Below are positions 2,579 through 63,353 of a DNA stretch of 64,000 bases, piece after piece. Where the stretch lies: NCBI GenBank assembly GCA_965112155.1, contig OZ218098.1, one strand, 5' to 3'. The stretch is from Podarcis liolepis. Taxonomy: Eukaryota. Every line of letters begins with the position of its first letter. Position 1 is the stretch's first letter. The translations under genes and the position numbers were made by a program. A model generated the notes under the pieces. The model was not told the DNA's origin. It made no database searches and saw only the letters and a program-made list of their open reading frames with translations.

Positions 2579-4544
2579 GAAGGTGAACAAGTGCTACCGC
2601 GGCCGCTCATGCCCAATCGTCATCCACTGCAGGTAATGCCCTGGGAAGGCTGAGTCTAATTGGTTGTGGTGTTGCCATGGAAACACCACCCCGCTGAGGT
2701 ACAGAGACCGGTTCTTTTCAGAAGCACATCGGAAAGTGCGATGGATTTTGCTGGGGTGGGTGGGGGATTTGCCCATCAGAAGCAGCCCATGTCATAGAAC
2801 TAAATTGTACTGTCAGGTCAATAGGTCCCCTTCTGAGGGAAACAGCAGAGTTGGATCTCCTCTTTTGTTGTGTTGTTCTCAGCAGCAGTGCCAAACCTCT
2901 TGTCTTTTTGCAGTGATGGCGCAGGAAGGACCGGGACGTATATCCTTATCGACATGGTTCTGAACCGAATGGCCAAAGGTGAGAAGGGATGGGAGGGAAG
3001 GCAGCTCTATTCCATGCACACAACCTGGTCTTGGCCAAGCCTCCAGGTGCACAAACTACTGCACAAAGACAGGCCCCTGCTGTTTGAAGGCCTCCAGCCC
3101 ACCATCTCCTCCTGTCTCTTCTGCATTTACCCCCGATTACCTTCATATTCCACAGCCACCATTTCGTTCATGGGTGTATGGAGTTTCCCTCTTCACTGCT
3201 TCTTACCCCTTCACTCGATTCTGACTTTACCTCTCCTCCTGCCTGCTAGGTGTGAAGGAGATTGACATCGCAGCCACCCTGGAGCACGTGCGAGATCAGC
3301 GACCTGGCATGGTGCAGACAAAGGTATGTTGGGATGCTTGCTTTCAGGTAGCCAATGTAAGGCTCTGCAGCCCCAGCCAGCATCATCAATGGTCAGGGAT
3401 GATGGGAATCATAGGCCAACATCTGGCAGGCATCACCTGTGCTATCCCTGCTCTGTGCCCACTACTTGTGGGCAAAACCTGAAACGCCTGCTGGTGGCAT
3501 AATTGGTTCCTGGAGGGCATGGAATAAGAATGCATTGGGACCTTCTGGCAGTGACAGGGTGGAAGGGAAGTGTAGGCTCCACCTGCACTATGCATTTAAA
3601 GTGGTATCACATTACTTCAAGCAGCCACGAACCCCCAAAGAATCCTGGGAGCTGTAGTTTGTTAAGGGTGCCGAGAATTGTTGGGAGACCACTATTCCCC
3701 TCACAGACCTGTAATTCTCAGAGGCCCCTTTGAAGAGGGATCGAATGTTCAACCACTTTGAGAATTATAGCTCTTTGAGGGGAATAGGGGGTCTTTCTTC
3801 TTTATAGCTCTCAGTACTCTTAACAAGCTACAGATCCCGGGATTCTTTGGGGGAAGTTGTGGTGGTTTAAAGTGGTCTGATGTGGCTTTGTATGTGTAGT
3901 GCAGATGAGGCCTAAGTCAAGCAACCATTGTACAGTGGTGCCCCGCAAGACGAATGCCTCGCAAGACGGAAAACTCGCTAGACGAAAGAGTTTTCCATTT
4001 TGGAGGTGCTTCGCAAAACGAATTTCCTATGGGCTTGCTTCGCAAGACTACAATGTCTTGCGAGTTCCTGCTGGATTTTTTTCTCCCCCCCCCCTCTTTT
4101 TCTAAGCCGCTAAGCCGCTTATCAGCTGATCCGATCAGCAGCTAAGCCGCTAAAAGCCGCTAATAGCGCTAATCCGCTAATCCTTCAATGGGCTTGCTTC
4201 ACAAGACGAAAAAACCGCTAGACGAAGAGAATCACAGAACGGATTCTTTTCGTCTTGCGAGGCACCACTGTACTCTTTGTCCCTGCCTATTGGGGGAGGG
4301 GGGGTCAGACATGGTGCTTGGTAGCATACTAAAGGTCAGGGGTTTTCTACCCAGGAGATAAGAGTGCCTAGGTTTGGAATGAGGAGGATGGAAGTAAAAA
4401 AAAAAAAAAAAAGGAAGAAACTAAGGACTTTTGGGTTGTCAAACCCTATCCAGAGCAGGCCGACGCTGTGCTCCTTCCTGGCCAAGCTTACAAAAGTGGG
4501 CAGAGTGAGGATGCTCAAGTCTACCTTTGTACAGTAGGATAGCT

Positions 4545-23863: not shown

Positions 23864-24420
23864 TCTTCTTGTTGTTGTTGTTTAGTCGTTTAGTCGTGTC
23901 TGACTCTTCGTGACCCCATGGACCAGAGCACGCCAGGCACTCCTGTCTTTCACTGCCTCCCGCAGTTTGGTCAAACTCATGCTGGTAGCTTTGAGAACAC
24001 TGTCCAACCATCTCGTCCTCTGTTGTCCCCTTCTTCTTGTGCCCTCAATCTTTCCCAACATCAGGGTCTTTTCCAGGGAGTCCTCTCTTCTCATGAGGTG
24101 GCCAAAGTATTGGAGCCTCAGCTTCACGATCTGTCCTTCCAGTGACCACTCAGGGCTGATTTCCTTAAGAATGGATAGGTTTGATCTTCTTTCAGTCCAT
24201 GGGACTCTCAAGAGTCTCCTCCAGCATCATAATTCAAAAGCATCAATTCTTCGGCGATCAGCCTTCTTTATGGTCCAGCTCTCACTTCCATACATCACTA
24301 CTGGGAAAACCATAGCTTTAACTATACGGACCTTTGTTGGCAAGATGATGTCTCTGCTTTTTAAGATGCTGTCTAGGTTTGTCATTGCTTTTCTCCCAAG
24401 AAGCGGGCGTCTTTTAATTT
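23864..24420 (-). mobile_element. BovB/RTE LINE 3' fragment
   Basis: ORF 23882-24211 encodes an RTE RT C-terminus (KLRLQYFGHLMRREDSLEKTLMLGKIEG...WRALVHGVTKSQTRLND); (CAA)n/(GAA)n tail. Confidence 0.92.
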
Positions 24421-31461: not shown

Positions 31462-34400
31462 TCAGAGGACAGTGCACATGATGGATTCCCTCTCCCTGTG
31501 GGAAGGGATAATGTCGGGGAAGACATACCGCATGTCACTGAGGACCGAGTCATTCTCTTCAGGGGCTGCCGGCAAGGCAAGCTGCTGCCTCTCTGGCTCT
31601 TCAGTGCAGCCTCTGCCCTTTGGGCCTTCTGCTGGCTTGTCCTCCTTTGTGTTGTCTCCTGCGCCCGGGCTCCTGGCTCTAATGGGAAAGGGAGCACCCG
31701 CCACTTCCTCGCTGGGCCCTGGCGTCCTTTTGTGTGCCCGCCTCGCGCTACCTCGCCTCTTCCTGGAGCTGTCTCGGGAGGCGCCCGCCAGGTGCTGCTG
31801 CCCCACGGTCTCCATCTCAGACAGGCTGTAGGCCAGGGTGGCCCGATGCAGCTCCTTGTCTTCGTCTTCAGGGTGGGTGAAAGAGAACCCTGCGCTCTGC
31901 GGGCGTGGCGGAGTCGGGATGTCCGTAGCAGACGAGCGCAGGATCTCGTGTTGCTCCGGCTGGATGAGCTCCACCGTGGCCTTCAAGTTGTCGTTGGTGA
32001 GGTCTGGAGGAGGTGAACAAAGCAAGGGGTGGGGAAGCAGCCCCTTCAGCATCACTCTGTGGGCCCAGCACCCCTGAGGCTCAAAGGGGCTTTGCGCTCT
32101 GCCCCAGCATGCAGCAGTGTCATTTGGATAGGAATGAGAGACAATGGGAGCAGGGGCAGGGTTCTTTAGCACCTGAGATAGCAACATAGAATGGGAAGCC
32201 TTCCCAGTGCCCCTTCAACAGCCCTCCATCAAGGAGGACCCACTGCCAATGTGAAAAGAATATCCTGACCTCAATGGATTTCTCTGCTTATTTTAATGTG
32301 GGAGAAACATGGACCAGTTCAAGCCTGGACCCAAATAGTCTTAATCCTTGCACAGCCGCTAATGGGAGATGAAGTACAATGGATGCCCTTATTACTCCAG
32401 GGACTGTCCAGCCTAGAGTGAGCCATAGAGCTGCTCCTGCTCCTCCTCAACTTAGGCTCAGTGTCATCCATTGGCTCTGGCAATCATAGTAAACACCAGT
32501 CACCACTGACTGAGATGCAGGCCAAGACCCCCATCTTCCCTTCTAGATGTGTGCCCAACTCTAGTGCCCTCTGAGTTTGATTTCTTACCACGCACGTCTG
32601 CCACTTTGAGCTCCCCGTCCGCGTCAATCTCCATTCTCTCCTGCCCATTCTCAAGGATCCTGCAAAAGAGGCCTTGCCACATTGCATTGCAGCACTTGCC
32701 ACATTGCATTCTGGTCAAGCATGCGCTGTCGCCACATCCCACCCCACACCCACACTCCAACAGAGGCATTCTCGGTGACTTCTTCCCTAAATTCCCTCTT
32801 GCTAGAAGCTCAGCACAATCCAAACCTGAGCATTGCTCAGAAGCACTGTAAGACTTAGGACAAAGTTAATACAGTGGCTATTTTTATCGTCAACACTGAG
32901 AATGTTTCACTTCATTTTTTTCTGCCTTAACAGTTTTTAACTAACACAAGCACAGCATGGGGGCTAGTTATATATCTAAACAAATAAACTGATTGATTGG
33001 GAAACCACAGATAGTAAGCAGGAAACGATTGTCAAGATCTACTCCACAGGGTTAGGAGTTATTAGTTACCAGTATTATTATGCAAGAGTGAGAAGAGTCA
33101 GATGTACAGGGGATGGAGTGGACTTGCAAGGAATCCAAAGGACAAGCTACGCATTCAAAATTGTCTCAATAATAATGAGAACTGGTCAAGAGGAACAAAA
33201 TGAAATTAAGCAAGGGCAAATCTGAAATGTTACAGCAAGGATAATTCTGTATTTGCAGTACTGTGTTGAGGCTTAGACACTAAAGGTTTTTAAACCCATA
33301 CCAGTTCATAAATGAACTGTAAGAAGATAAAAGGTTAAACAATCTGAGCAAAGGATCCGCCTACAGATTAAGGAAGGACAATATACTGGTTGTTTTAAAT
33401 AGTATTTTAAAAATCTCAGACGGTGATCAGGTAGGTGGACATGGCAAAAATAATTGAAGGGAAGCAGTTTTAGGTTAAACATAAGGAAGAATTTCCCATT
33501 TGTAAGAGCATTTCATCCCACATGAAGTGCTTTTAAAGGTCTCTTCTATTGTATTATTTGCACAGCACATTAATTTGGGTTAATGGAGGACAGGTAATAA
33601 AAAAGGAACATATATTCTAAGTTCAAACAAAATGCCAAATGATGGTTTGGCAAAGTCCCGAAGTCACAAACTCCCTCTTCCCCCTTCACTCTCCATTCTC
33701 CTTTTGCACAATTTGCTTTAGTGAGTTGTTTCTGCTTTTGCAGAAAATGATAGTTTGCCATTACATCTGATTAGGGGGCAGGCTAACTCGCGTGCGCCTG
33801 GCCCCTCCTTGTCACCTCACCTCCTGGTGGTTATCCGTTTGCCATTGATGTACTTAGTAGATGTGGAGACAGAGCAGAAGCCTATTCCTAATTCAGCACC
33901 AGGCCCAAACGTAGTGAAGAAATCTAGGAGGGGAAAGTGACAACATCACTGCTGAGGGGGAGGGAGGCAGCTAGCGCAGGCCTCAATACCAGCCAAATGG
34001 CAGAGGCCTTCCCATACTGCAAATGTCAGTGGGAATGAAGGGACTGGACAAAGGAGGCACTAACACTTAACAGGAGAATTGTTCCTCAGACATTTAAAAG
34101 CAGGGGTGAATTGGGTCCTTGTGAGATGACAGAGCCAGAATGAGGTAGAGAAGCAGATATGGAAGAGGCAAAGTGTATTGGAGAAGCACAGAGGCAAGCC
34201 CTGCAATGAGCATGTGCAGCAGATTGCCCACTGAGCTGCTCAAGGCTGCAAGGTGATGCGTCCTTGCCTTACCTGTCTGGAATGGAGAGCTGTAGGAGCA
34301 ATAGGAGTAGGTGGTACAGCCTGGCAAGACCCACTGGGGTATTCCTCCTTGAAGATCTGTATATGGGGACAACTCCTCTGGAAAGGGAGGAGGAGGCTGA

Positions 34401-37800: not shown

Positions 37801-39208
37801 CTGTGGTGCATGCCCAAACTACATAATCTGTTGGTGTCTTCACATTAGAAGAAGCAATATTGGCTAGGGCTGCCATACATTCGGGATTTCAAAGGCGGAA
37901 TTGACATCCTGGGGGGGGGGTGTGGATTTCCAAGAAAGCTCAACAAAATTTGGGGTGTACTGGTTTTTACTTTTTAAAATATGGAAACCCTAATATTGGC
38001 AATTATGTAATTTCTGCATTCCCCAGATATTACAGATATTACAGAAAGGACCAACACGTAGCCGGCGTACAACCAATTTGGAGGAATGCCTTTGTAACCT
38101 CAAGGATAGGCTACTATGATGGACTCTGTTTGGGTTGCATTCAGTTACTATCTGGTGGGTTCAGCTAGGAGACAGTGTGGGATCCTGCTTCCATGCCGGG
38201 GTATGCCTCAAAAGATGAATGACACCTGTGATGTAGCATCTGCATTGGCTCCCTGTCCTGTTGCATTCCATGCACAATGCAAGGTGCTAAATCTGACCTC
38301 TTAAGCCCCTTTGGCCGTTATTATTACTGAGTGCCTTCTTGAATACATTGTCCATGCACCAAATTCAAATAGCAAGGGCATGTACTGTAGATAGGTGAGT
38401 TTGGTGGCTGACCTATAATTGCGGAACTCCTTTGTCCTAGAGTCCTTTGTCCAATCAAATTCTGGGCCTTTAAGCTCTCCAGAATGGTTGCAGAACTTTT
38501 TTTCTTTGGTCTGGCATTCTGTGGCCAGGGTTAATCAAGCATGGGGTGATCTTTTTTTGTTTTGCTTTCTACATGAGTACTATTTCATCTTCTTTTTGTT
38601 TGTGTATGTCATATTACTCTGTGCACTTGTAATTACATCCTTTTTATTTTTCAATAAATGATATTTTTAAAAAGCATGGGATGATTTTAATTTATTTAGC
38701 TAAGCTATTGTATGATTTCTTTGAAGTGCAATACTGTAATCTACCTGGAATCCTTGGGAAAAGGTAGGCTAGAAATTGAATGTGCCAAACAACATAAATA
38801 AAGGGCAGATTGCACAGATATTCCTAAAGGGATAGGGGTGAATCACAGTTTAGATGTGCCCAGCACAAAAGCCCCTGGACTATTTACCTGCAATTTGGCA
38901 GTTTTATCTACTCTAGAAGGGCTGCTATGTATCCACTTCTGTCAAAGGTGAAAAAAGTCATAGACATTTAAAAAAATTCCCAATAGTGAATAAGGGTGAG
39001 GAGAAGGAAGCAGGGTAAGATAGACTTTCCCAAGCTGAACTGGGCAGGCTCCAAACTGATCTGAGCCAAACTGGGCTATTTTATGAAGTGCCAAATTCAG
39101 GTCCATATAACATCTTGTGGTTGGTGCACACTGTGCTACTTACGCCTTCTTAATGTCATCTGAGGAGGCCGTTTGGGGGATGTCCAGTGTTTGGTAGTAG
39201 TCAACCAT
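31462..39208 (-). CDS. DNAJB2-like tandem paralog A, ~390 aa, C-terminal CaaX (CTVL)
   Basis: Exons 39208-39144 ([22 protein letters not shown]), 37702-37593 ([36 protein letters not shown]), 36538-36479, 35844-35728 ([20 protein letters not shown]), 34377-34273, 33923-33821 ([18 protein letters not shown]), 32659-32589 ([18 protein letters not shown]) and 32003-31462 ([20 protein letters not shown]...ESIMCTVL*). Total 1173 nt, open, same exon phases as DNAJB2. AATAAA at 31423-31418. Confidence 0.9.
34785..34842. repeat. (CT)n microsatellite
   Basis: Direct reading. Confidence 0.95.
37167..37425 (+). mobile_element. tRNA-derived squamate SINE (Squam3-like)
   Basis: A-box TGGTGTAGTGG, B-box GGTTCGCTTCC, (CTT)n tail, ~260 bp. 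Confidence 0.8.
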
Positions 39209-41822: not shown

Positions 41823-44060
41823 TACTTGTCTTCTTGGCTCAGGGTCGCATAACTCCACACCCTCCAACATTTTTCCAATGAAAATAAGGATGTCCTAAGG
41901 AAAAGCAGGACATTCCAGGATCAAATCAGAAACCGGGACGGCTTCTGTAAATCCAGGAATGACCCTGGAAAATAGGGACACTTTGAGGGTCTGCAGTAAA
42001 TGCCTGCTTAGTTAGGTGTATGGGAATCAGAGGTCGGTCCAATTATGATGATCAGTTGGCTGAGGAATGTTATTTCCCTGATCATGAGAAAGCCCATAAT
42101 TTTGAGGTGCCTTTGGGCTTCAAAGCTAGGGAAAAGCTGAGGTGGTGCCAGCAACTGATATTACAGAGGTGCCCCCCACAGTCTGTCACAATCTCAGTTT
42201 TTTTCAATGCCATAGAAAGCTAAATCTGTGAGTGTTGGACAAGTTGCTTTGGATAACAACCTAACCAGTTGTTCCTATTTGTGCTTATAAAGGTTCACAC
42301 TGCAATGAGTGCCTTGGTACCCTCCTGTGGTGTTTTTCGTTCTGGCTCATCCCAGTGGAAGATAATCCATGAATTTTCTCAAGCCAAACTGCCGGCATGG
42401 TTGTTAATAAGTGATGCATGTCATGTAATGAATAGGTGCATATAATTAATAGGTAGTGCATAGAGTGTCCCAGTAATTCCTGAGGTAGGAAGCTTCAGAC
42501 AGGCCATAAAACAGTAATGATCGTGATTGACATACATCTCCTAAGGGATTTGTCCTGCTCTGCTCCTGTTTGCAGAGTGATAAATGGGGGGGGGGGAATC
42601 TGCAACAACAAAAACAAACCTCTTGAAATATGTCCATGCACTCAGTTACAACTCATGGCAGTCACAATCCATATTAGGGAAAATACCTTTAGCAGGTCAA
42701 CCAAAATGGTGTACAAGCCTTCGACTTCTCCAGAACTACATCAGGCTAGACGGCAGACAGAAAGCAGAGTAAGGGTAGGAAAAAGCCATGTGACCATCAT
42801 CTGATTACAGTCTCAAGATGGAGTGGGGGAGGTGGCAGTAGACATTCAAAACAGGCTAGTTATGTACTAGCCAGGTATCAGGTTACACTAAGACCTCCTG
42901 GGGAAAATAAGCATTCCTAATGGCTGATCCCCCATCTCTTCAATAATGAAACCTGAATAAAACCTGGATAATAGCCCCTTAATGTGGTGCCAGAGATAGT
43001 GGAATCGCCCACCTGTATACTTTGTAATTAAGTCTTTAATAATGCTTCCCACTAGTTTTCCCAGAATAGATGTTAAGCTAACCATAATATAATTTCCTGC
43101 CCCCCCCCCACCACTGGATCCCTGTCTCAAAAATTGGTGTTACATTGTTCACTTCCTGTCATGGACATTTTATTTATAAGCAGGGAGGGAACAAAACTTC
43201 TGTTGTTCTAAACACTTACTAGGGAAGTAAGTTCCAGTGAACTCAGTGTGACAAATTCTGGATAAGCAGAGCTTCCATGTTCAAGAGCAGTATTCAACTG
43301 AATACCAGTTGATTGAGGCTGGGAGGTGCATGCCATAAGAGGCCTACTCAGGGCTTTTCCCCCAGCTGGAACTCACCAGAACTCAGTTCTGGCACCTCTC
43401 AGGTTGGCGCCATTGCCATATAAGGTGTTCATGGTGAGTTCCAACATCTCTTTTCCTTTAAAAATAGCACTGGGCCTATTGCCTTCATACCCATTTTTGA
43501 ACTTACTGAAGACATATGGTTAGCCACTGTGGAAAGTCAAGTGCTGAACTAGGTTGTCCAGTAGTTTCATTCCGCTGAGGTCTTTGGATGTTCATATGTA
43601 GGCATGGGCAATCGGGGCAGAAATTATCAGAGTGTTGAGGAGGATATGTAAATGCTATGGGGATAAATTCAGACAAAGCTGCAAGTGGCTTAAGTGTCAT
43701 GGATATTGGGGGCAGAAAACTATTTCAGCAAAAGGATCCCTGAGCCAAAGCACTATTGTTCCTCTCCACATCAGCCCCTGGATACTCAGTGTTCCCACTG
43801 CTGCATCTGTTACAGTAGTTCAGGGATGGAAAACCTGTGACTCTCTCGATGTTACTGGATTACAACCCCCATCATCCCTTGCTGGCTGGGGCTGAGGGAT
43901 TCTGGGAGTCCAGCATCTGAGTAGCCTCATAATAATTCCCATGTATCTTGTTGAGTAAGAGCAAGCACCAAGTATGAACAAATAAAATTTGGGTTCCTGA
44001 CCCTTCCTTTATTGTACTCTCAAACACTCACTCCTGGAGGTGCCCAGCACTCATCCACAC

Positions 44061-47000
44061 TCACAGGTTGTCTTGAAAGAGCTTGCACCAGCATTGGGAG
44101 CATCGTGGGCAGGAAGATGGGGCATTTGGGTCAAACATTTCCCCTTGGCTACTTAAATATGGAGACCAAGTCTTTCCATTATGAGCTGGAGCGTCAATAT
44201 GTGGAAGAAGCATGCTCTTCCTTGGATTTAACTGGTTTATTCTATTCCAGGCTTGGATATTTTCCCACTGGTTTACTTGCATGGCCTGATTCGTTCCACG
44301 TGGTTTTCTTTTAGCCGGAAGTGGGGCTTGGCCAGCACCAGAGAACTCGGGGGCCCCACCAAAGAGAAACCTTGCTGTATTTTCTGCTGGGCCAAGCCAG
44401 ACGGTAGCTGGCACCTTCCATGTATAAGCAGGCATAGTGCTCTCAGTGTGCTGGGGGTCTGCTTTGTTACCTCTCCCATCACTGTTTTGGACCTGCACCT
44501 TGCTCTTCCCAGCATTCAGCTGCTTCTTCTGGACTGCCATGTTGTTCTTCACAGCATGCAACTCATTTTTCTGGACTTTCATCCTACTCCTCTCATCATT
44601 CAGTGCCTTCTTTTGGACATTAGCCTTGCTCTTCCCGGCGTGCGTCTTGTTTTCCCTAGCCTGCAGCTCACCCTTTTGGGAATGTATTGCTTTTCCATCT
44701 TTCATCTTTGGCGATATCAACTTAGTCATCCTCCCTGACATCTCCTTACTTTTGATTGGTGAGGTTTTCCTCCTAGTGTACCTCAGGTGTCCAATACGTG
44801 GCTCCTGCTTGTCAGATCGTTCCTTCTGCCCAGCACACTGCTCTGTCCCATGATCAGGTTCACGTCCTGGATGGGATCTACGTTTCTGTGCTGAAAATTT
44901 CTCAGTTTGCATCTCATGCTTTCCAGGGGCGGCATCAGCTTCCCCATTCCGAAGCTTGTTCTTGGTGCTTGACTCTGACTTCTCATGCCGCTGTTTCATC
45001 TTCCCTGTATGAAGCTTATTCTCACCATGCAGCTCAGTTTTTAGCTTGGGAAGCTTAGCCTTCCCCGTATGGGTCTCCCAATCTTCGTTCTGTTGCATGG
45101 CCTTTTCTGCATAGGCCCCCTTCTTCTCAGTTGGGGCTTTCCTCTTCCCATTGGTGCTCTCGCTATTCTCCACAAGAGGTTCTTTACCAGACTTGCTGCT
45201 CCTAGTGTGCAATGCGCTGTTCTCGACAGGCAGGCTTTTCTCCCTAATCTGCAATCTCTTTCTCCCATCCTGGGTCTGCTTACCCTTCCCGACTGGAAAA
45301 TCCTTTTTCTCAGGAGACAATTGGTTATGCTTTGCCCCCTGTCTTTTGTGAGGCTTTCTACGTGGATGCAAAGGAAGGGGCTTGCTAGGCTTCTGACCTG
45401 GATCGTTGGACTCAGAATCTGACTCTGAATTCGGTTCACTGGATTTGGAGCTCGACCTGCTACACTCAGAACTGGACTCAGAACTGGATTCATTAGACTC
45501 ATCAGAGTTCAAGGTGGAATAATGCTCTGAACTCGACGACTCATCATCAGACTCAAATGTTGAGTCATCATACTCAGAACAAGAGCTCTTGTCATTCTCC
45601 ACACTCAACTCGTCATCCTGAGAACTTGGTTTGTCTGGCTTGGTGTGGTCTTTCTCGTCTACCGTATTACTCTTGTGTTTCTCATGGGCAGGCATCACAC
45701 CTGCAATAAACCAAGTTTTTAGTCTTGTGACTATTTTGCTCTGTTCACAGGACAAATCTAAGCCTGATTTCTATGCAGTGGAAACAGTTGTCTGTAGTCT
45801 GTCAGACTGTAGTCTGACAGGTTTTTCACCTTGGTTCCCTCTGCAACAACCGCCATGTTAACGGGGGGATAAGTCCCCTTTCTTATAAGCACACAGAAAA
45901 TTTAATGTTCAAGGATGAATCTTCAGACGCATAACAAATACATTTCCTTTAGTTAGTAGAACTTAAGCATTTCAGAAAAGAAGATAAGTGAAATTAAAAG
46001 CATAAGTCACAATTTAATGTATCAGAAAGATACTTATATCCAACTTCCTTTGAAGGAGATGCATTTTTCTAATCTTTCTCAATTATCAAAGAAAAACAAG
46101 ACTGCATTCCACAAAATATACAACTTGAAAGGATCTGATAATCATATGCCCGAAGTACATACAATGCAACTTCTGCAACAATTTTGATTAAACATAGCTT
46201 ACTATCATCAAAGCAAAATAATTTTAGCAACATCTAATAGAACTACATCAAATACAGTTTCTTTCTTTTTTTAGTGTATATGGATGTAAGTTACATAGAT
46301 ATATTGTATTATAAAAACCTAACTGGTACAAAAATGTGTTTGGCTCACACCTGAGCATAATAAAAGTATAAGTTATAAAAATAGCATTGCTGTGAACACA
46401 ACTTGTTCAAATAATCTATACAGGTGTTTTGATTAAGTCAGGCTAATTCAATATTTTCTCCTAAAAAGAGACAAAAGCATTTCGTTGCAAGATAGGAAAT
46501 GGGGAATAGTGATGTGCTAGTTTGACACACAGGTCTAGGCTACCTTTGAAGGATATTACAAAATCAGAAAGATGTCTTTGATTTCCATGTTACAACTTTA
46601 ATTGTGAAGCCTTATGGTGAGGTAAATTAGCTTATAGGGTATGTTCTAGTGTTTCCAGAACCAATCAAAATGGATGCAAAAATGAATTCAGAAGTGGGCC
46701 TATTTGCCACAGTTTATTTAAAGGACAGTTCAGTTAGTGGCCTGGAATACTCAGCACTTCCAACTTACTTGAAGGCAAAAACCAGCAAAGCTCACGTGCG
46801 AACCACACCATATTTCCTATAAGACCCCAAGGGTCTTCAGAGCCCCAGGGTTCTCTTAGAGACCACCTGGTGAGCCCATTATTCTGAAGTGGTCAGGGCT
46901 CTTAGCGTCATTAGACCCAAATTGTTCTCTGTTCATTCATAGATAGCTGGATCATTGAATTAACATATATGACAATACAAGCAACAGAAGACAAGAAAGA

Positions 47001-50000
47001 TTAAATAACAATGGATGACTCATCAATTAATATATCATGGTGGTTAAAGTTTATTCTAATAGGTAACTTTTCCTATTGATCCCAATGGTTTCTGTAGTGG
47101 TGGGATCTTGCCAACCTCTACACTTCCTTCTCCTGTTTTCTGACTCACTACTGGGGCATTCTGCTCTATAACTCCACCCACTTCTACCCACTTGTACCCT
47201 GCTCCTCTAAGGGAGCCCTGTCCCCCTTTGACCTTTTCATTCTCCTCTATTTCTATACTGCCTTTGCTTTCTCCATCTTCTCTGAAGATGGAGAAAGTGT
47301 ATCTGAAGAAGTGTGCTTGCACACGAAAGCTCATACCAAGAACTAACTTAGTTGGTCTTAAAGGTGCTACTGGAAGGATTTTTTTTATTCCATCTTCTCT
47401 GTCTTCCTAGTCTTCCTCCTCTCCCTTGCCTCCTACTTTAGCTCCCTCCTTCCGAGTTGCATCCATTATCCTCCTCTGCTAGCTTCCAGTCTCTTCTGCT
47501 TTCTCTTTAACCTACTTCAGAGCACCATCAGTCCTGCCTTTATTCTCTGGCTGTTCAGGCATCCCTACAGCTTTAGTGATGCTACCTTGCTCTGCTTGAC
47601 TCACCTGCCAGCCAGACTGTCAGGCTGCAGGGTAGGCAGACGAGCTGCAGCAATGCTAGTTCTCAACAGCATGTTATACCCTTAATTGGAAAGCAAGTTT
47701 GGGCTCGGCTGGGCAAACACCTGCTTAAGCAACCTTCTGGCCAGCTAAGTAATTGGTTCTCCATGAAGGAGTTGAAATTTCAAGCATAAGGAGCTGACTG
47801 AGAAAGTGTGTTATTAGCCAACGGGTTTTTGCCCCTTTTATTTTAGACTTCAAACATGTTTGGAAACATCCATTGTACATATTTTAAAACTAAAACTAAA
47901 TTCTAAATAATATATGCAGATAAACCTGACACTGCTCATTAACATCTCCTAGCTATTGATGCCTGCCTCACTCAAAACAGTGCTTCCCATCTTTAAATGT
48001 TCAAATCCCAGAGGGAGAGATTCTGGGGAGCAGCAACCGCAAATGGTGCGCCTGGCCTATTGTTGGATGGAGGACATTACTGGGAAGGCAGCCAACAATA
48101 ATTATGCAAAGGAAGGGGTGGAAACTGTTTATTAGATATGCCAGATACCAGCTTTTTAGCTCTTCTATAGGTCGAACCAGCACTTGAATCGTGGCTCCAA
48201 GGTTATAAAAAGTCAGCCAACACATTCTGCACAAGCTACAGCTTTGGAACAGTCGTCAAGGGAAGTTCCACTTGGAGTAGCTAAGCGCAAAAGGCTATGC
48301 AGTGCAGGTTAATGAGAGCTGAAAAGCTATGAAAATTAAAAAGTACATGACATGCTTTGAAATAGGTTATAAACCTGCAACAGAGTGGTGGGCAGGAATA
48401 AGGCACCCACAACTGAGCTAGCCAGCTAACACCCAGCATGTCAATACAGCACTTTCTGTCATGCACCAGATAATGATTTTGATTATGCTCGATCTGATCT
48501 CTGTCTGCCAGGTCAACCAGAGGCAAACAGCATTCTTATATTAATTGTGTGGCCTCTGGCTGGCTGACCCAGGATTCAGTGCAGGTCAGCTGAGCTGACA
48601 ACCTCAGTGGGATTAAGTCAAAGCTGGATCCAATTAGAAAGATGTTTCACTCTTTCCCTTCCGCTGCCTTGGGTCCCAAACACATGTTACAAGGAACAAG
48701 TGGCTGCTGCTGATCTCGGTCTCCCTGGTAACATGTAATTAAAGAAGAAGTGCCATGTGGCATCATCACACTCTGAATTTCCTCACCCCTGCAAGCAGCA
48801 CCCAATGACAAGGCACTGGAGCTCTACTTTAGCTAAATATTACCGGGGCAAGATAGGAAAGGCAGGTCACTGGCTGCCACACATTCCTCATCGCATGTTA
48901 TTTGGCCAATGGTTGCAGCTGTGCGGATCAAGAAGAACTCCACAAAGACACTCCTAATGGCGGCTTTCTCCATTTCCTCTCAGGAACGTGAGACTGAATT
49001 GTGAAATCACTCACCTTTTTCATTCTGTCTGTTCTGGAGGGAGCAATCCAGGTTACGCTTGTTTGCTGAAAGGCAGAAGATATACCTGAAAGTTCTCCAG
49101 CCCTGCTGCAGCCAGCTGCAAGCACTTGGCTCAGGATTTGGAAAACTACCACTCCTCTAGGCACAAGGCATCCATAAAACGGAAACTTATTGTATTCCCC
49201 CTCCCCCCTGGTGACTAACCAGCTTTTTAAGAAGCTTACAGTTAGGGATAAACAAACCTGCCAGTTTCAGTTTCTCTCCCTTTTTTTTAGTTTTTTCCAT
49301 CTTTAAATTCAATTCACCACATTCCTGCACCAGTTTGCTTTTCTTTTTTAAGTCTATGTGAAAATTCATCAACATTTCTTCTAATATCTGTATGCAATTT
49401 TGCCTAGTTTTTGCAAGCTATTTTCTCTTAACATGAATCATTTTTGTTTGTTGTTTTTGCTATATGCATTTTTACTTTCCTCTAATGTATACACAGGTGT
49501 TTAGGGGTTGTTGTTGTTGTTTTCAGAACTGCATTGCAAAATTCAGGTAAGTGTGAATTTCGAAGGACAGCTGCATTTTGGTTTGTGTTTTGGTTTGGGA
49601 AGCGCGAATAAGGTAGAGTTGCATTAAAATGCAAGCTGAAACAAATTTATGCCCCTGTCCCTAGTTATAGTCAATTGCAGCAGCATAGGGAGCCATGAAA
49701 ATGTGCAGAAATGCTGGCAGCCGTCTAAAGAAGAAGGCATATTGCAGGAGAGAAGCTCTAGGCACCTACTAATAGGACCTGGACTGATGGCGAAACTGCA
49801 TGTTTCCCTGCAGCTCTACTACTTCAGAAGAGCACCCCAAAGCAATTCCCCAAAAGGAGGATGGAAACATTGAGGCACGAATGGGACACCAGCCTCCTGT
49901 GCATATAAACAAAGAGGGCGATGCCTCCAGATGTGTGTAGACTGCTGCTCTTTATCTATTGGGTTTGGACCAGTCTGACATAAGGTGGGTTATAGCAATG

Positions 50001-51784
50001 GCGTCACAAAGTTTGCTTTAAAAGAAAAAGAAAAGTGGGCAGAGAAAATAGTGTGGGTATATATCCACTCTAAATACTGGTGCCATTTCTTGTTTGCCTC
50101 TCCCCCTGCAAGCCTGGGAATTGCAGTTTGGCACAGGGGCTAAGAGAGATCTATCACCGCCTGGTTCCCACCCAGAACTGCATTTCCCAGGGAGAAGACG
50201 GTTAAGCCCGTAGACTCTTAAAGAGATCCAGAGAGAAGGAGAAGGGGAATATATATGTTAGAAAATAAATAAATGTGGGTCCCATGCTGCAGGTTGGGGT
50301 TAAGGATGCTTCTCAGGTGGGAAAAGACTGAAGATTACTGGTGTGGATTTCTAACCAGGATTGCTTCAGTGCATAGGGCAGGTTGAAAAGACACTCTCCC
50401 TCACTCTCTTGCTGATCAGCAACTAGGGTCAATTTGTGTCTCATTGGGAAACCAAGGCCCCAGTGAAGTGAGAACAGCAGAAGGGTCTAGGAGTCTGAGC
50501 CCTTACAGTTTGACAGCACTTTGTATGCTTCCATTATCTCCTTTGACTTCTCTTCAGCTTCTTTTTTGTTATCTGGGTTTTTGTCAGGATGCCACATCTT
50601 CAGTTTCGCTCTGTACCTGTTCAGTTAAAGAAAAGGATGTAAAGAATTAGGTTCCTGATGGCCTGTTTGTTTTTTGAGCAATTCATCCTGATTTGTTTGC
50701 ACAAAATTTGTGCAGAGGTTATACCACTCTGCCAATTGGTAATTATCTCCCACTTTCCAGTGCTTTCCCCATCACTTTTTTTTTAACTGCAAAATTCTAC
50801 AAATAGAACCAGGTTTGTTGTACAAGAGTACTGTAGTGCTCCTTGCTACTTATCACCCTGTACCCCTTCCTCACAGGTGGGTTATGTAGGTGTTATTTAT
50901 TGCACAAAGGACATAAGATGGTATCTACCTGAATGGGTGAGAGATCTGTGCAAACCTCCTGACCGTCTGGAAACAACTTAGTCTGTTTGGGACCACCCGT
51001 TAACCACCTGGGCAAATATATACCCGGTATATTTTGGAATCTATTTCTGCAACTCAAAATCAAACACTTTGCCAACCCTAAAGAAGGAAAATGCTTACTT
51101 CATTGACTTCTGAAGGTATTAGAATTCAGTGCTTCTTCATTGCCCCAACATAACAAATCCCCATTCCTAGCCATTAAAAGTATATATAAGTATACTTGTC
51201 CATTTCATAATAGGTGACTCAGGATTCAGTGCTGGCTTCTCTTTTGAAAACAGCACATACTCTTTTGTTATCTCATCCACACAACCCATTCATTCAGTCT
51301 GCCCCTCCTCTCTGTCCTATACACACAATGTTGCCTCCCCCTTCCCTAGCTGCATTTAGGCCTCACGAAACCTTCCTACTGAAGCCAACAGAAGAGTTTC
51401 TCCAGCCTAAATAAGTATGGTGCAAAGGCATTTTTGGCAAGGGGGAAGGTTAACCTTTCCCTCCCTAGCTGTGACTCTGGCTTGAAAAGAAATCAATTAG
51501 GCTTGAAAACAAATCCTATTGGCTTCAGTAGGAAAGTCTTTTGAAGCCTAAATGTGGTGCTGGGGATGAGGAGGGAAGAATGGAGGCTGTGAGCCAGACA
51601 GAGCTGCCTCAAGGCTGGCGATTCCTCGGGCGAACGGAATGCTCTGAAGGCTGACTTACGCCGTTTTAATGTCGTGATGCGTTGCCCCCTGGGGAATGCC
51701 CAGGACTTCATAATAGTCCTTCTCATCTTTTGTCTGTCCTGTTGAGAGACTTGGAGGGACACTGGTGTGTCTTGGCTGACCCAT
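44061..51784 (-). CDS. DNAJB2-derived paralog B: J-domain fused to a large low-complexity tail, ~641 aa
   Basis: Exons 51784-51660 ([42 protein letters not shown]), 50616-50507 ([36 protein letters not shown]), 49065-49015 ([17 protein letters not shown]) and a phase-1 acceptor at 45700 into the 564-codon ORF ending at 44061. Total 1926 nt, in frame. AATAAA at 44013-44008. Confidence 0.8.
47050..47390 (+). mobile_element. Penelope-like retroelement terminal (pLTR) fragment, boundaries approximate
   Basis: Hammerhead followed by ...ttagttggtcttaaaggtgctact, a terminus typical of reptile Penelope elements. Confidence 0.55.
47299..47336 (+). ncRNA. Minimal type I hammerhead ribozyme motif in a Penelope-like element remnant
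   Basis: GTAT-CTGAAGA-A-GTGTGC-TT-GCACAC-GAAA-GC-TC-ATAC: conserved core, 6-bp stem II, palindromic AGCT stem III, stem I GTAT/ATAC. Confidence 0.7.
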
Positions 51785-53575
51785 GCAGGGCAGAGACAAG
51801 GAGATGCCGTAAGTACCTGGCCCTGCAGAATAGAAAGCAGAAGGAGAACTAGGCAGAAAGAGCAGGCTTGCTGTCTTGACATTAGTCTATAAATTATAAA
51901 ACCAGCTTCGATCTTGGATCAATGCCAATTATTTTAATTGGTTTAAGTTTGTTTTTATACTCGTGTTTTTAATTAACAATTATTTGCATTAGATCGGACT
52001 GTTATAGGATGTGAGATCTTTGCTGTATATATTCTCATATCTATGGTTTTAAACTGCTTTGTGTATAGCAAAGTAGAAAAGCGGTATACAAATGAAAATT
52101 TAAAAGCCATTGGTTTAAACCTCAGCTGGGTGCATCTGAGAATTAGTCTTTGCCTTTCAGGGCCACATGCATCACTACAGGAAACAGAGTATATGCAGAG
52201 TATACATTTCAATCAGTATCATACCACTTCATAGCTACAATTCATAGAGTTCCCTGGGAAGAAGAATTGGTTGTAAAACCACTCTAGTAATTGAAGCTCT
52301 GTGAAGGGAATAGAGGTCTCCTAATTACTCTCAGCACCCTTAACAAACTACAGTTCCCAGGATTCTTTGGGGGAAGCCATAATGTTAAAGTGGTATATTA
52401 GTTCTGTAAATGTATGGTATGGATGTGGCCTAAGAAATGACATAGTCCCTCAGAGGGTAAGTGCTGTGCTATAGTTTTCTTCACTGTCAAATTAGCCGCA
52501 CATTTATATGCAGTGAATATTTCTTGCCACCAGAGCAAGCAACAAGATGTTTACACTTCACTGAAATGAAATGTTGCTTTAAAACAGAGTTCTCTAGCTG
52601 ATGCCCTCCAAGTGCTGATGAGTTCCAACTCAGTGGTCAGGGATGGGAAATACTAGAGTCCAGCAACACCTGGAGAGCACTGGTGGAAGGCTGCCTTAAA
52701 TCGACCCTTTGACATGATTAGAGCCCAAGTCTATGACCTATTTGTGGGATAACCAGCCTCATATAACCAACATACGTAAGTCTAATTAATGCATGAAGGA
52801 GTTAAGACCATAGAGTAAGCTGTCCTGCCAAGTTTAGTTCACTGTGGGAGGGACTAGGTAATCAAGACTTTGTTCCCCTTCAGTCTTTCTGAGAAGCTCA
52901 GTGAGTGAAAAGGCTAACCTGGTTGCTACAGCTTAGCTGCATAGCTCTCTCAAGCCACTCTTTGCATTCCTATACCAATAACTTAGGAACTTTCACCTCT
53001 GTAACTGGCAAGTTTTACTGCCAGTGCAACTTTTTTCTGAATGCTGGAGGGAAAAAAGTACATGAACCAGATCTTTGAAGAATTTGTAAGTAAACCAATC
53101 TTAACTTACCAAACATGTGGTCTTTGGAAGTTTTGGAACTCACAAGGGCATATTTTAAAGGTCTAACAGGCTATACATCCACATTTCACTTTGCTGCATA
53201 TTTTGTGATTTTAAATCTCTGCTGTGGTTCTCTCAACAAAGAGTATTTGCCCCAAACGTAGAACTTGGCATCCAGAAATTCTCCTTTTATACCTATTTTT
53301 TCCCCTTGAACCAACAATACTTAGCACAGCAGTGACCCTGGCCTTACGTATCAAAGGCAATTGTTTTCAGGTGGCATAAGATGAGCTAGTCAACCCAGGA
53401 TGAAGGCTTGGTGGGTAGTTCCACTAAGTATCTGAACAGCTGAAACCCAGGCCCTACCTCACAGTCTCAATGGATTTTTCCTGATGATTGACACATCCTT
53501 TGGTATATTCATTTTCCATGTAGGCAGAGCCCTAGTCACTCAAAGCTGCTGCCCGGGGTAAGAAAAGAGGAGCTT

Positions 53576-58281: not shown

Positions 58282-61200
58282 ATAAACATCCTGTCTTCAA
58301 GAACAGAAATCAAATCTGAACCTGGGTAGTTAACTAATATTCATATCATTACCTCTCAGAAGTTGTTAAATATATCTCTCACTCCAAAAACAAGCAGTTG
58401 CATAGTATTTTTTTAAAAACAACAACAACGCACATAATTAAAATGGTAATGATGGTCAAAAGCAAGAATTACAACAGTGAAATGTCAGGTTTTAATTCTG
58501 CACTCTCCTAATTCACAGGCTGGGTTTATACCGCCCATAAGTCTGTAATGAGTGCTGGCTCCGGGTTCTGGTGACCCCTTGGGCAAGGGGCCCTCAGTGA
58601 GCCCCTCTCCTCACCAAGGCACTGTTGCCCACTTACTTCTCCTCTCTGGGCCCACCCTGATCATTTGTCCACAGCAGAGTTTCCAAAACTTGGCTCTCCA
58701 GTTGTTTTTTTAACTACAACTCCCATCATCTCTAGCTAGCAGGAATAGTGGTGGGAATTGTAGTCTAAAAACAGTTGCAGACCCAAGTATGGGAAACAGT
58801 GGTCAAGAGGAAGCTGCTGTTCCATCTCCTTGCTCCTGTCACAGCATACTTGTAGAGGGGCTAGTGTGAACAGGCTGCAATAGCAAGGAAGAGGAGCAGG
58901 CCTCAGTGGCTCCAGAGACTGGGCAATGGGCCCCCAGAAGGGATGTGGGCCTTGGCGGTAGCCCAATGACACCTGCCCTTGCTATGGCTTGCCCCTTCTC
59001 CTCCTCCTGCCACAACCCACAATAGATCTTCTTGTTCCCTCCCCTGAGTGCCAATGCTTGCCAGATTTTAATTTGTCCTATTCAAGTACCTTCAAGAACA
59101 GACTGACACATGGATACATGTCAAGTTGCTGTTCAAGGCACAGGAACAGTTCTAGCGAGGAAACTGGTCACCCTAAGGAAACCATGTGACTTAGTGAGTG
59201 AAAGCTACAATGGTTCAGTCTTGGCTGTCCACTAGTCCACCCTCACCTTTTGGTTGTGATCTGTTTGCCGTTGACGAAATTAGTTGATGAAGAGTAGAAG
59301 CAGAACCCATTTCCTCCACCAGCACATGCACCAAATGGCAGTGTGTCTCCTGAAAATCAAGATGGCAACATCAGGCCTCAAGCACTTGAAATGAAAGCCA
59401 AGAGATACACAGGTAGGAACACAGTAGATACTTCAGTGGACCTTCAGCTCTCCTGGGCCTGGCTTTTGGAGTAGTTTTCCCATCGGGCAGTTTGAGACAG
59501 CTTAGGAAACATCCAGGAGAGGAAGAGCCACAGAAAGGGTGAACCTTCCATCCTGGTAACTGCTGCATAGGGGCAAGACCCACTGGTGTTGCTGAGGCCA
59601 CTAGGCCAAGTGTATGTTCATTTCCTTGAATAAAGAGTCAACTTCACTGAAAACAGACATCTGATTATTTTAGTGGTGACCTGCCTCTGTCTCCAGCCTT
59701 GACAGCTGGCTACTTGGAGTGAGATTTTTATTTTGCCTGGTTCTACCATGTGTGTCTTGGCTTTCTTTCTTGACTCACCTGAAACTATTTCTCCAGAAAC
59801 ACCTCTTATATAGCACCCTTTCTTTCCTTGTGGCAGGTTGTAGGCCAGAGAGATTATGTGAGTTGACAGGCAGAGAGTTAGACCAATTGACTTTTAGGTA
59901 CCTTCCAGTCCTCTGAGAGGAATCACCACTTACCAAAGAAAGGGTCCCGTCCTCCAAAGAAGTCCCTGAAGACATCATGGGCACTGCGGAAGTGGAACAT
60001 ATAATCAGGGCTCATGTTGGTCCTAGATGATGCCCCAGGTCTACCTGAAAAAGTTAAAAGGAAAGATATGTCAAAGCCAGGTATTCTGGATATTTGATGA
60101 GGTGATGGGGTGTGGGACACAGGGCCTGGAAGTTGTCAAAATAGAAATTCCTTTCCCCGTAGCTAGATGCCCTGGAACCAGAATGCAAAATCCAAGAAGG
60201 ATGAAGATTGTTATAGGGCATTGCTGTATACAACCCCCTTTGAACCTCAGCAGATGAACTCACCATGAGCAAGTATAGTCAGGACAGTTTAATGTTGGGG
60301 TGGTGAACTTGTGTCCCTTCAGATGTTGCTGAACTACAACTCCCATAATCCCTGACCATATTTACTAGGGGTGATGGTAACTGGAGTCTAACCAAGGGCT
60401 ACAGGTTACCCACCCCTGATTTATAGAAACACAAAGTAAGGGTGCAATCCAACCAATGCTAGTTTCAATGGGAGAGAATGAATCACATGCTTTGTTCTCC
60501 TACTGAAACCAATTGGATTTCAGAATTGTGCCCCAGGTATGTAAGCACTGGGCTTCTGAATAGACCCAACGTTCTGGGTGGAACCAGAGACAAACATATT
60601 GAAAGCTGAATCTAGTACTACACTGTACAGATTTGCTCATGGTCATCTAAATTCCAATTCAGAAACTAAAGGAGCAGAACTTCCACTGACATTATTTGAC
60701 ATTTGTCCCCAGTACTAAAACAGCAAATGTTTGGGTAAAAATGCCTTATCCATTCTTTACACATTGTACATTCTGGATATCACTCTGTTAATCCTGGGGC
60801 CAAATATAAGTGGTAGCTTTTAATTGCCCTGTGACTGACCAATGTCCACCCCAAATGAGACTGGGTAGAGATCTTTCACCCTCACCCTGCAGCAAGTTCT
60901 CACCACACTGATAGCTTAATTTTCTCTTTACAAGAATACCAGATGTAATCAACATGTTGAGTGAAGTTGTGTGACCATTTCCTTCATTTTTTTCTTCCTT
61001 AACCCAAAGCAATCTGGGACGAACAGCACTTGGAGTGAGAGAGGCTACTTTGCCCTTTCCTCTTCTGTTATTTACCAGCTCAAAATCACACACACACATA
61101 ATACAGACTTCTTTTTGCCATGAGGAAAAAGGCACAAGAACCTTACAGTAATCTCTCCTCAGACACAATCTATCCCAGGTTGCTTTAAAGTGGGTAAATA

Positions 61201-63353
61201 AATTTATACCATTTTTATCCCACTCTTCCTCCCAAAGGTGCCCTGGGCAGCAAACAACAAAACATTAAAAACAATAGTGTTTTTTTTAAAAAATATAAAA
61301 CCAAAACATTCCCACAGCTAACTTTCACAGTTACCAACACACAATATCTTTTACAAAGGAAAGAACCGTGGAACTAGGTTAAATGTGTTGCTTGAGTCAT
61401 CTTATCTTCTGTGACAGAGAAGATTTTTCCTGGACTGTCTCTCACTTACCTCTTCCCAGTAGCCCATCCTTACCCCAGCGGTCATAGATGTCACGTTTGT
61501 TCTCTGAAAGGGAGAAAGAGTAAGAAGTCAACCAACCCACCATCCGATCTCAGAGACAGTGGTTTCTAACAGCAGTCTGGCATGCCATGCTGGAGCTTGA
61601 ATAACAGGTGCCTCACCTGGAAGTGGAAACCACTGTAGGCGCATCTAGGCTGTCAGCATTTCACAGGAGGGATTCAAGCACATACGAGAACTTTAGATTT
61701 GTGTGATTAAAAAAGATGAAAGGGCTCCATCACTCTACCAGCACAACAAATCCACTTGAGAAAAACCCGGACTTTTTGCAGTTAGGAAAGTGATGTGGAA
61801 TTGCATTGAAAAGCATGAGATGAACTAAGGATGAATGGACAGGTGTATCAAATGATGAATGGGCAGAATTGTCATATAACTGTCCCATAAACAAATTGGA
61901 ACAAATGCTCAATAAAGACCAGACATAGTCTAACCACTGTGTAGGCTTTGTGCAAGCAAATCTGGATGGATGCTCAATAAATAGTCCATTTGGAGGAGCC
62001 CTGCTTCTGCCAGTGTTCTTCCCACGATAGCATATAGTTTGAAACTTGAAAATGCATCTTTGCCACAAAATAGCCAGGAGAGATTAACCATGGCAAAATA
62101 GATTATGCCACTAGGTAATGGTATACTGAACAAGGTCGTCAGGCTATAGAGCATGTGATAACCAACCACCACCTAAGCCCAGAGGATTTTAGCATCAACT
62201 GAGGATATTCAATGCAGCAATCAGGTCCTTGGTGAATTATTGTCACTTTAAGGTACAGGTGGAAAATACCAGCTTCCTTGAAATGAACAAGAGATACTAT
62301 CAGAGTCAGATTAAATGGTGGAATTAGTTAAATTCAACCTTTTACTGCAGAGAAGACATTTTCAGCCAGCAGCGTGTCAAGTCTCTAAGAGAGACCAATA
62401 AAGAAGGGGGGGCACACTGCTCACATACAATTTCTGAAAGCTCTGAAGGCCACTTCACGCACACACCCTTCAAAGGTAAGGGGGAAACAATGGCCACCAC
62501 AGCATGGGGGCAGCCCAATGCATGAAATCACACTAAGTCTTTTAGGGGGGCGTGCCTGTGCATGTATAAGGTAGCATTAAGGACCTACATGAATGTGCCA
62601 AGGATAATGAGTGAGGAAAGGCCTATAGTTAATGGGGTCTGCCTGTCTGTGTTAGCATTTTGCATGTAACAGGTGCCAGAATATACTGCAAACCTTTGAT
62701 ACAGTTTGCACATCTTTTGAGCCTTTTTGTGTCCTTTTCTTCCAGGTCTCTCCTTTAAATGATGCACTGAGGGCTTATCTACACTTACCTTTCTTCCGCT
62801 CTTTCCAGGCACGGCCCATGCATTAAAGCTTCGTGTCTGAGCACCCTCCTTTTTTTTCTTTTTTTTTTTGCTCTGAATCCACTCTTTAAAGCTCAAACGG
62901 AGCAAATTGCAATCTGCTTAAAACCCAAATTGATGTTTGCTCCAACTGAGTGCTAAAGAGCAGGATTTTGTGAGGAAAGCTCTGGGGTGGGGAAGCCCCC
63001 ACAAACTGCTACACTTAGTCCCCAGTAGGTGCAGAAGTGTCAAGTGGTTTTGCTTTCCCATTTTGGCATCCAAGTCATCAAATGAATTTGCTTGGATTTC
63101 TTGTTTTAAGCAAAATCCCAATCTTTGTTCTACCACATACTTGCATAGGAAACATGCAACTGGTAAAGCTCTGATCAGGAGGAGGAGAAGTACTGCACAA
63201 GAGGCAGTGATGAGAGAGGGTTGGTAAGAGGTTGAATACTTACTGTCTGAAAGTACTTGATAGGCTTCTGAAATCTCCTTGAATCTCTGTTCTGCAAATT
63301 GCTTGTTTTCTGTGTTTTTATCTGGGTGCCACTTTAGAGCTTTCTTCCTGTAT
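56403..63353 (-). CDS. DNAJB2-like tandem paralog C (first coding exon beyond window end)
   Basis: Exons 63353-63244 ([36 protein letters not shown]), 61503-61450 ([18 protein letters not shown]), 60044-59934 ([23 protein letters not shown]), 59349-59247 ([16 protein letters not shown]), 57644-57574 ([23 protein letters not shown]) and 56671-56403 (GVPTERAS...[10 protein letters not shown]). In frame if exon 6 is skipped. AATAAA at 55966-55961. Confidence 0.82.
56700..57362. mobile_element. Non-autonomous hAT element with internal GC-rich minisatellite
   Basis: TIR-like ends CAGAGGTTTCCAAC / TTTGAAAACCACTG, 8-bp TSD GGTTAGAC/GGTTAGAT, CACCCCC(T)GGG repeats at ~56940-57150. Related copy at ~16682-17105. 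Confidence 0.75.
58252..58280. repeat. (CA)n microsatellite
   Basis: Direct reading. Confidence 0.9.

Follow-up and report, generated by a model that had tools for sequence, protein, structure and literature searches.

A DNAJB2-like J-domain gene of Podarcis liolepis with a long, apparently squamate-specific tail in place of the class B regions

The stretch analysed here, hereafter the window, comprises 64,000 nucleotides (nt) of Podarcis liolepis DNA (assembly GCA_965112155.1, contig OZ218098.1) with no N anywhere. It carries four J-domain genes on the same strand, named g1, paralog A, paralog B and paralog C, of which paralog B is the subject of this work. Reading of the sequence showed that paralog B consists of four exons on the minus strand, with canonical GT..AG splice sites and a single reading frame of 1926 nt. 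The coding part of exon 1 (51784-51660, minus strand, 125 nt) starts with the ATG at 51784-51782 and ends at the donor GC/gtaagt; its product comprises an N-terminal extension of 22 residues, J-domain helix I and the first part of helix II. Exon 2 (50616-50507, minus strand, 110 nt), flanked by a cag acceptor and a gtaagg donor, encodes helix II, the His-Pro-Asp (HPD) motif and helix III. Exon 3 (49065-49015, minus strand, 51 nt; cag acceptor, gtgagt donor, both ends in phase 1) corresponds, in degenerate form, to a helix-IV exon. Exon 4 (45700-44061, minus strand, 1640 nt; cag acceptor) encodes a tail of 545 residues and closes with the TGA stop codon at 44063-44061. Inclusion of exon 3 gives 641 codons, and skipping it gives 624. 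The frame of the last exon belongs to a stop-free run of 564 codons (45755-44061, minus strand), for which the chance expectation given the composition was about 4e-14, and an in-frame ATG is located two codons past the acceptor of exon 4. An AATAAA polyadenylation signal (44008-44013, minus strand) lies about 50 nt 3' of the stop codon. An initial annotation of this DNA, made from the letters alone, had proposed three J-domain exons joined to a stop-free 1640-nt exon, and all of them lie where it had put them.

Reads and contigs were mapped on 45101-51100, among them X1 and X2, two contig sets of a close relative (about 70 Mb each) that differ from the window by about 3% within introns. Depth in X1 and X2 was 52-125 over exons and 0-5 over introns, and X1 and X2 were taken as RNA because of this difference. 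The joint 45700/49015 was found in X1 (depth 52) and X2 (depth 102), with CT..AC borders on the plus strand that correspond to GT..AG on the minus strand, and the joint 49065/50507 was found in the same two sets at the same depths. In both sets the contigs had a loose end at 50616, which proved to be the last 30 nt of exon 1. A single X1 contig of 2113 nt covered the 5' untranslated region and exons 1, 2, 3 and 4, and extended past the stop codon, ending about 40 nt beyond it as judged by its length. The large exon is thus part of the same transcript contigs as the J-domain exons, and the splice from 49015 to 45700 that had been postulated from the letters is present both in these RNA-like contigs and in gene models that join J-domain and tail in more than 12 squamates. 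A TATAAAA box (51953-51959, minus strand) was located upstream of the 5' end that the X1 contig implies. Exon 2 begins at position 269 of this contig, and the distance from the implied 5' end to the box is about 26-32 nt if contig and genome are colinear 5' of the ATG.

A third joint, 45700/50507, which skips exon 3, was found in X2 only (depth 42). Exon 3 is therefore a symmetrical 51-nt cassette exon, with the included and the skipped form present within one run (depth 102 versus 42). Ortholog gene models from different species were split in the same way, some including exon 3 and others skipping it, which matches the two isoforms present in the RNA. The initial annotation had noticed neither this cassette exon nor the conserved motifs that the tail holds. 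The mapping showed that paralog B is a genuine protein-coding gene, expressed and spliced into two isoforms.

Comparison with the three siblings in the window revealed which parts of the ancestral gene paralog B retains. Its exon 2 is 61-69% identical to that of the siblings. In the siblings, helix IV is encoded by a phase-1 exon of 48-54 nt with a KRxxYDxYG-type sequence, and another retained exon encodes the glycine/phenylalanine-rich (G/F) region with the helix DVFRDFFGG. Exon 3 of paralog B matches the siblings' helix-IV exon in size and phase but no longer carries the YDxYG signature, whereas KRNLYDxY is retained in the gecko ortholog. When translated pieces of the siblings were compared with 44000-52000, matches were obtained at exons 1 and 2 only, which agrees with the earlier claim that the DNAJB2 exons behind the J-domain are missing. 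No remnant of the siblings' exons for the G/F region, the serine/threonine-rich (S/T) segment, the β-domain (C-terminal domain) or the ubiquitin-interacting motifs (UIMs) was found in 44000-52000, and a profile of the tail gave no match to the sibling genes. As far as the shared locus, orientation, exon phases and J-domain similarity indicate, paralog B descends from DNAJB2. It arose by tandem duplication of DNAJB2.

Proteins of class B'(ST) have an S/T segment followed by a β-domain, and DNAJB2 also has UIMs (PMC12799103). In paralog B, no S/T segment, β-domain or UIM was found, and the G/F linker with helix V that directly follows the J-domain in class B proteins was also absent. What was found instead is a J-domain with neither a G/F linker nor a DnaJ-type zinc finger, which places the protein in class C, a set of J-domain proteins defined by exclusion and not a homologous family. 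By its architecture, paralog B reads as a class-B gene turned class-C protein, and the same conversion, suggested in the initial annotation, is borne out by the locus and exon phases that it shares with the siblings and by the lack of any post-J exon.

The exons of paralog B were searched singly, and full-length comparisons were run on database orthologs. Exon 2 alone matched the Pfam DnaJ profile (PF00226) with 45.3 bits, above the cut-off of 27.8, and exon 1 added profile positions 1-20. The HPD motif was intact in the window (WHPDKNPDN) and invariant in all orthologs having exon 2. The HPD motif and helices II-III were nearly invariant from gecko to lacertid, and the J-domain core, with a conservation of 0.85, was the second most conserved segment of the protein. 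AlphaFold2 folded residues 21-81 of the Podarcis lilfordi ortholog, in its exon-3-skipped form, into helices I-III with a predicted local distance difference test (pLDDT) score of 84-94. The N-terminal extension, which had been estimated at about 20 residues, is 22 residues long before the DYY motif versus 2 residues (MV-DYY) in the siblings, and it was conserved in 11 orthologs of paralog B. N-myristoylation at its conserved Met-Gly start was rejected on inspection, owing to a His at the Ser/Thr position.

The surface of helix III that holds the inhibitory helix in DNAJB6 was changed in paralog B. Numbering helix III so that the Asp of HPD is residue 33, positions 46, 50 and 54 of paralog B are Ser, Met and Lys, whereas DNAJB6 has F46, A50 and E54. 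In DNAJB6, F46 packs on F100 of the inhibitory helix V and A50 touches helix IV; the contacts of F46, A50 and E54 include helix V, helix IV and the G/F residue R94, and the autoinhibited state opens when A50 or E54 is mutated (PMC10624832; PMC12126530). The three siblings have F/F/F at position 46, A/A/S at position 50 and E/E/Q at position 54, so that the Ser/Met/Lys combination is specific to paralog B, and S46 and K54 were fixed in all orthologs having the J-domain exon. The surface that would hold helix V thus appears to have been changed after helix V was lost. Absence of the G/F helix and replacement of the three docking positions on helix III are consistent with the idea of an uninhibited J-domain.

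The tail was charge-segregated, as expected from the initial annotation. The charge profile showed that tail residues 26-100 carry a net charge of -20 with about 40% Ser (the acidic Ser-rich block, 45399-45623, minus strand) and that residues 101-400 carry a net charge of about +40. Within the acidic block, an acidic-aromatic motif (45534-45581, minus strand) had a conservation of 0.80, with Tyr, Phe and Ser invariant across squamates. A role of the EYDDSTFE motif as a two-phenylalanines-in-an-acidic-tract (FFAT)-like element or in histone binding is speculation. Six clusters of Lys and Arg in the tail resemble nuclear localization signals (NLS), and three of the six contain conserved residues. 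Five Lys-rich tandem repeats of 14 residues stand in register at tail residues 337-406 (44481-44690, minus strand), with a consensus of about ELHAGKSKVNVQKx. In Hemicordylus capensis (P0006), residues ~399-480 contain five extra, nearly identical "ELHAG…" copies in the same 14-residue register, plus degenerate units. The repeat region seems to grow by 42-nt tandem duplication, with a copy number that varies between lineages, because Hemicordylus carries these extra in-register copies.

Within the entire protein, conservation was highest in a Trp motif of 18 residues (44379-44432, minus strand), at 0.90 versus 0.85 for the J-domain core; Y, W, K, P, T, W, P and E were invariant in this motif. 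The motif is followed by an 11-residue segment (44229-44261, minus strand; conservation 0.81), the sole helix predicted in the tail, with an AlphaFold2 pLDDT of 62-73, and by a C-terminal Cys cluster, C-x2-C-x2-C-x-C (44082-44114, minus strand; conservation 0.82). Three of the four Cys residues in this cluster were invariant and the fourth nearly so; the cluster is not a CaaX box, and it corresponds to the Cys-rich end noted earlier. For the full-length Podarcis lilfordi ortholog, AlphaFold2 gave a pLDDT below 50 over almost all of the tail and a predicted template modelling (pTM) score of 0.23, and for the last 129 residues alone it gave one helix, with a mean pLDDT of 53.8 and a pTM of 0.20. 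The tail is therefore predicted to be mostly disordered, yet with constrained islands. The description of the tail as a disordered polyampholyte held with respect to disorder, but the conserved islands and the 14-residue repeats showed that it is not featureless.

A search with the tail (44064-45698, minus strand) returned 16 homologous proteins of 561-654 residues, all from squamates, with 39-94% identity. The identity was 88-94% in lacertids, 65% in Rhineura, about 48-51% in iguanians and Hemicordylus, 42-46% in snakes and 39% in the gecko Paroedura. Thirteen of the 16 have an N-terminal PF00226 domain and are 612-654 residues long. The J-domain led to a second gecko, Sphaerodactylus, whose tail matched the tail profile at E = 1.7e-23. 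The open reading frame (ORF) was intact in all squamates sampled. Nothing beyond this family was found by any of the other searches. A phmmer search of the tail against 1.8 billion representatives gave five clusters only, every one of them from the paralog B family, and a search with a tail-only profile returned the same 16 proteins. The tail profile had no match in the PDB; in Pfam, no domain matched the tail at E <= 1 except a chance match to DUF3450 (10 bits); the ESM Atlas gave no usable match to the whole tail or to its C-terminal 129 residues; and Rfam gave only a chance match to mir-7640, with 24.6 bits versus a threshold of 90 bits. A hidden Markov model of the tail found no second copy in the window, where the tail is single-copy. 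These searches suggest that the tail has no detectable relative outside squamates, which agrees with the earlier view of it as new. The paralog B family would be at least as old as the crown squamate ancestor, because it is present in Gekkota and given the squamate phylogeny as generally known.

A transposon-encoded protein was rejected as the origin of the tail: no Pfam match was found, the tail is single-copy in the window and all homologs are orthologs that join J-domain and tail. The two other outcomes that would have spoken against the gene, an ORF lacking conservation in related lizards or matching a transposon, were likewise not seen.

The relative's transcript was compared with the window over 45101-45698 to give the rate of change in part of the tail. 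The 18 differences comprised nine synonymous and nine nonsynonymous changes; with 118.7 synonymous and 478.3 nonsynonymous sites in the 597 nt compared, the proportions of changed sites were 0.076 (synonymous, pS) and 0.019 (nonsynonymous, pN). The resulting dN/dS was about 0.25, and the binomial test gave P = 0.004 against neutrality for these 18 differences in part of the tail only. Tail codons 14-104, which span the acidic block, had six synonymous changes and no nonsynonymous change. The comparison showed paralog B to be under purifying selection, as far as such small numbers indicate. All nine replacements sit in a 55-residue linker, tail residues 101-155 (45233-45398, minus strand). This linker may be relaxed or positively selected; here too the numbers are small.

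Taken with what is known of J-domain proteins, the architecture suggests how paralog B would act. A duplicated DNAJB2 kept only its J-domain exons, those for helices I-III with the HPD motif and a degenerate, skippable helix-IV exon. The G/F linker, S/T segment, β-domain and UIMs were dropped, and splicing goes to one 1640-nt terminal exon instead. The J-domain would stimulate ATP hydrolysis by Hsp70 and would be constitutively accessible, having no inhibitory helix V and replaced docking residues on helix III, while the tail would decide where or on what Hsp70 is loaded. Candidate determinants in the tail are the acidic block of phosphorylatable Ser residues with its invariant Tyr/Phe motif, the Lys-rich region with its NLS-like clusters and 14-residue repeats, and, at the C-terminus, the ultra-conserved Trp motif, the helix and the Cys cluster. 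We consider it rather probable, although well short of certain, that Hsp70 is recruited and activated by a J-domain free of G/F autoinhibition, with the tail setting the site or the client.

Several points weigh against this reading. Activation of Hsp70 by paralog B is a prediction from the sequence. A conserved core Phe is lost through F46S, and with helix IV degenerate or skipped, the activity of the J-domain could be weak. Targeting by the tail is pure inference, and AlphaFold2 predicted no confident fold for the C-terminal module. Models without a J-domain occur in three species (P0006, P0012 and P0015). The label of X1 and X2 as RNA is an automatic guess, though the spliced contigs argue strongly for RNA. 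The exons had no coverage in the raw RNA-seq run X19 or in the contig set X9 (other species label), and expression of paralog B therefore appears to be restricted and not ubiquitous.

Some of these points would be expected if the J-domain were a relic that acts on Hsp70 weakly or not at all. The protein would then work through its tail, for example as a basic protein that has a structural role or binds nucleic acids, and the J exons would be mainly a 5' leader. The replacement of the helix-III core Phe by Ser in all orthologs having the J exon, the degenerate and skippable helix IV, the higher conservation of the tail Trp motif than of the J-domain, and the J-less models in Hemicordylus, Crotalus and one Logan contig are all in keeping with it. 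However, exon 2 on its own clears the Pfam cut-off, AlphaFold2 folds the J-domain confidently, and a decaying leader is not expected to keep the HPD motif and helices II-III near-invariant (0.85) from gecko to lacertid across the squamate radiation. We regard a relic J-domain as unlikely.

It is also conceivable that the J-domain is still autoinhibited, either by a tail element (ENxARFLFGG) that docks on helices II and III in place of helix V or by the acidic block binding the basic helix II. The top profile-profile match of the siblings' G/F exon falls on the FLFGG segment of the tail, the Phe preceding GG is invariant, and the acidic block has no amino-acid change relative to the close relative. 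Against this, the match of the G/F exon was not significant (hhalign E = 0.74, probability 0.06%), and a relic of the G/F region in the tail, for which ARFLFGG was the best candidate, was rejected on the same numbers. Two of the residues that contact helix V, F46 and E54, are replaced, and the AlphaFold2 model of the full-length ortholog put nothing confidently on the J-domain (tail pLDDT below 50, pTM 0.23). Autoinhibition retained in this form seems quite improbable. A false join, with the large ORF being a separate gene, a transposon protein or a pseudogene, would account for the in-frame ATG two codons past the exon 4 acceptor and for the J-domain missing from some database models, but it is largely refuted and very remote given the 2113-nt contig that spans exons 1-4 with canonical junctions, the J-domain and tail in 13 independent species models, the lack of a transposon or Pfam match, the single copy in the window and the ORF intact in all squamates sampled.

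Under the preferred reading, in which an uninhibited J-domain is directed by the tail, paralog B can be set against known systems. Like DNAJB2 (HSJ1), DNAJB6 and DNAJB8, it has an intact HPD motif and helices I-III. It stands at the DNAJB2 locus in a tandem array by a PTPRN-like gene, on the same strand as its siblings and with the same exon phases. Unlike DNAJB2, DNAJB6 and DNAJB8, it has no G/F linker with helix V, no S/T segment, no β-domain, no UIMs and no CaaX box; its helix-III docking residues are changed, its helix IV is degenerate and optional, and it carries an unrelated tail of 545 residues. Some class C J-proteins act as targeting adaptors, for example DNAJC9, which acts on histone H3-H4, and DNAJC2. 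Paralog B resembles these in combining a J-domain with a family-specific region that is not of the G/F type and that would confer specificity for a location or a client, and differs from them in its recent, squamate-specific origin from DNAJB2 and in that no sequence relationship to any of them was detected. With its charge and its NLS-like clusters, the tail hints at a role in the nucleus or nucleolus. A location in the nucleus was not supported by the data, nor was tethering of the protein to chromatin, condensates or sperm-tail structures, which the initial annotation had offered as examples.

J-domain proteins give Hsp70 its specificity, and a new architecture would thus mean a new job for Hsp70. 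The gene is in effect a natural experiment on the autoinhibition model that was derived from human DNAJB1 and DNAJB6, with the G/F helix deleted and the docking residues changed afterwards and kept that way throughout squamates. In human DNAJB6, the uninhibited state is pathogenic (limb-girdle muscular dystrophy D1, LGMDD1). As a bold guess to which we give a small chance, a tail exon born in squamates, partly from 42-nt duplications, may have made a naturally uninhibited J-protein that was tolerated since a targeting tail replaced the client-binding part; the acidic Tyr/Phe motif, the NLS-like region and the Trp/Cys module might then direct Hsp70 to a nuclear or chromatin target, possibly basic proteins such as histones, in analogy to DNAJC9. 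With its datable origin, paralog B also shows how a large, mostly disordered and taxon-restricted region with constrained short motifs can be added to an old domain.

Databases list the orthologs merely as predicted, uncharacterised proteins or give them names that follow from composition. DNAJC21, cylicin-1, SRRM2 and Nipped-B-like were assigned automatically, and these proteins share with the family only low complexity rich in Lys, Ser and Glu (DNAJC21 also a J-domain). An identity with DNAJC21 or cylicin was rejected, as neither C2H2 zinc fingers nor a cylicin domain nor any other Pfam domain was found in the tail. On the sequence comparisons, these names reflect composition and not homology, and the misleading labels (DNAJC21-like, cylicin-like, SRRM2-like, Nipped-B-like) should yield to one family name. 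No paper on paralog B was found in the literature on squamate DNAJB2 or on the ortholog database names, and a recent phylogeny of DNAJB2, DNAJB6 and DNAJB8 does not mention the squamate paralogs.

The other J-domain genes of the window lie on both sides of paralog B. In g1, exon 1 is near 20960 and exon 2 near 19107; in paralog A, they are near 39202 and 37701; in paralog C, exon 2 is near 63352 and exon 1 lies past the end of the window. An ORF piece with the catalytic motif of a receptor-type tyrosine phosphatase (2870-3265, plus strand) converges on g1 and is probably PTPRN, judged by its sequence. PTPRN is the neighbour of DNAJB2 in human, in convergent arrangement. Because this PTPRN-type exon adjoins it, as in human, g1 is probably the ortholog of DNAJB2. 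In paralog A, the terminal exon (31462-32187, minus strand) keeps a UIM-like stretch and ends in CTVL, a CaaX-like box. The pieces of paralog C at 59932-60045, 61448-61501 and 63245-63352 (minus strand) include a canonical helix-IV exon and the exon of the G/F helix, DVFRDFFGG.

Two further elements were observed in the window. Between DNAJB2 and paralog A, an ORF at 23882-24211 (minus strand) resembles the C-terminal part of a long interspersed nuclear element (LINE) reverse transcriptase (…RTRWLDSV…DRSAWRALVHGV…). Inside intron 3 of paralog B, an element of about 90 nt (47296-47389, plus strand) that ends in a T-run had a very high depth, up to about 14000, in all four RNA/contig sets. Its flanks varied between reads, Rfam gave no match to it, and the window contains it once. 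It resembles part of an abundant interspersed repeat, similar to a short interspersed nuclear element (SINE), that is transcribed from many loci.

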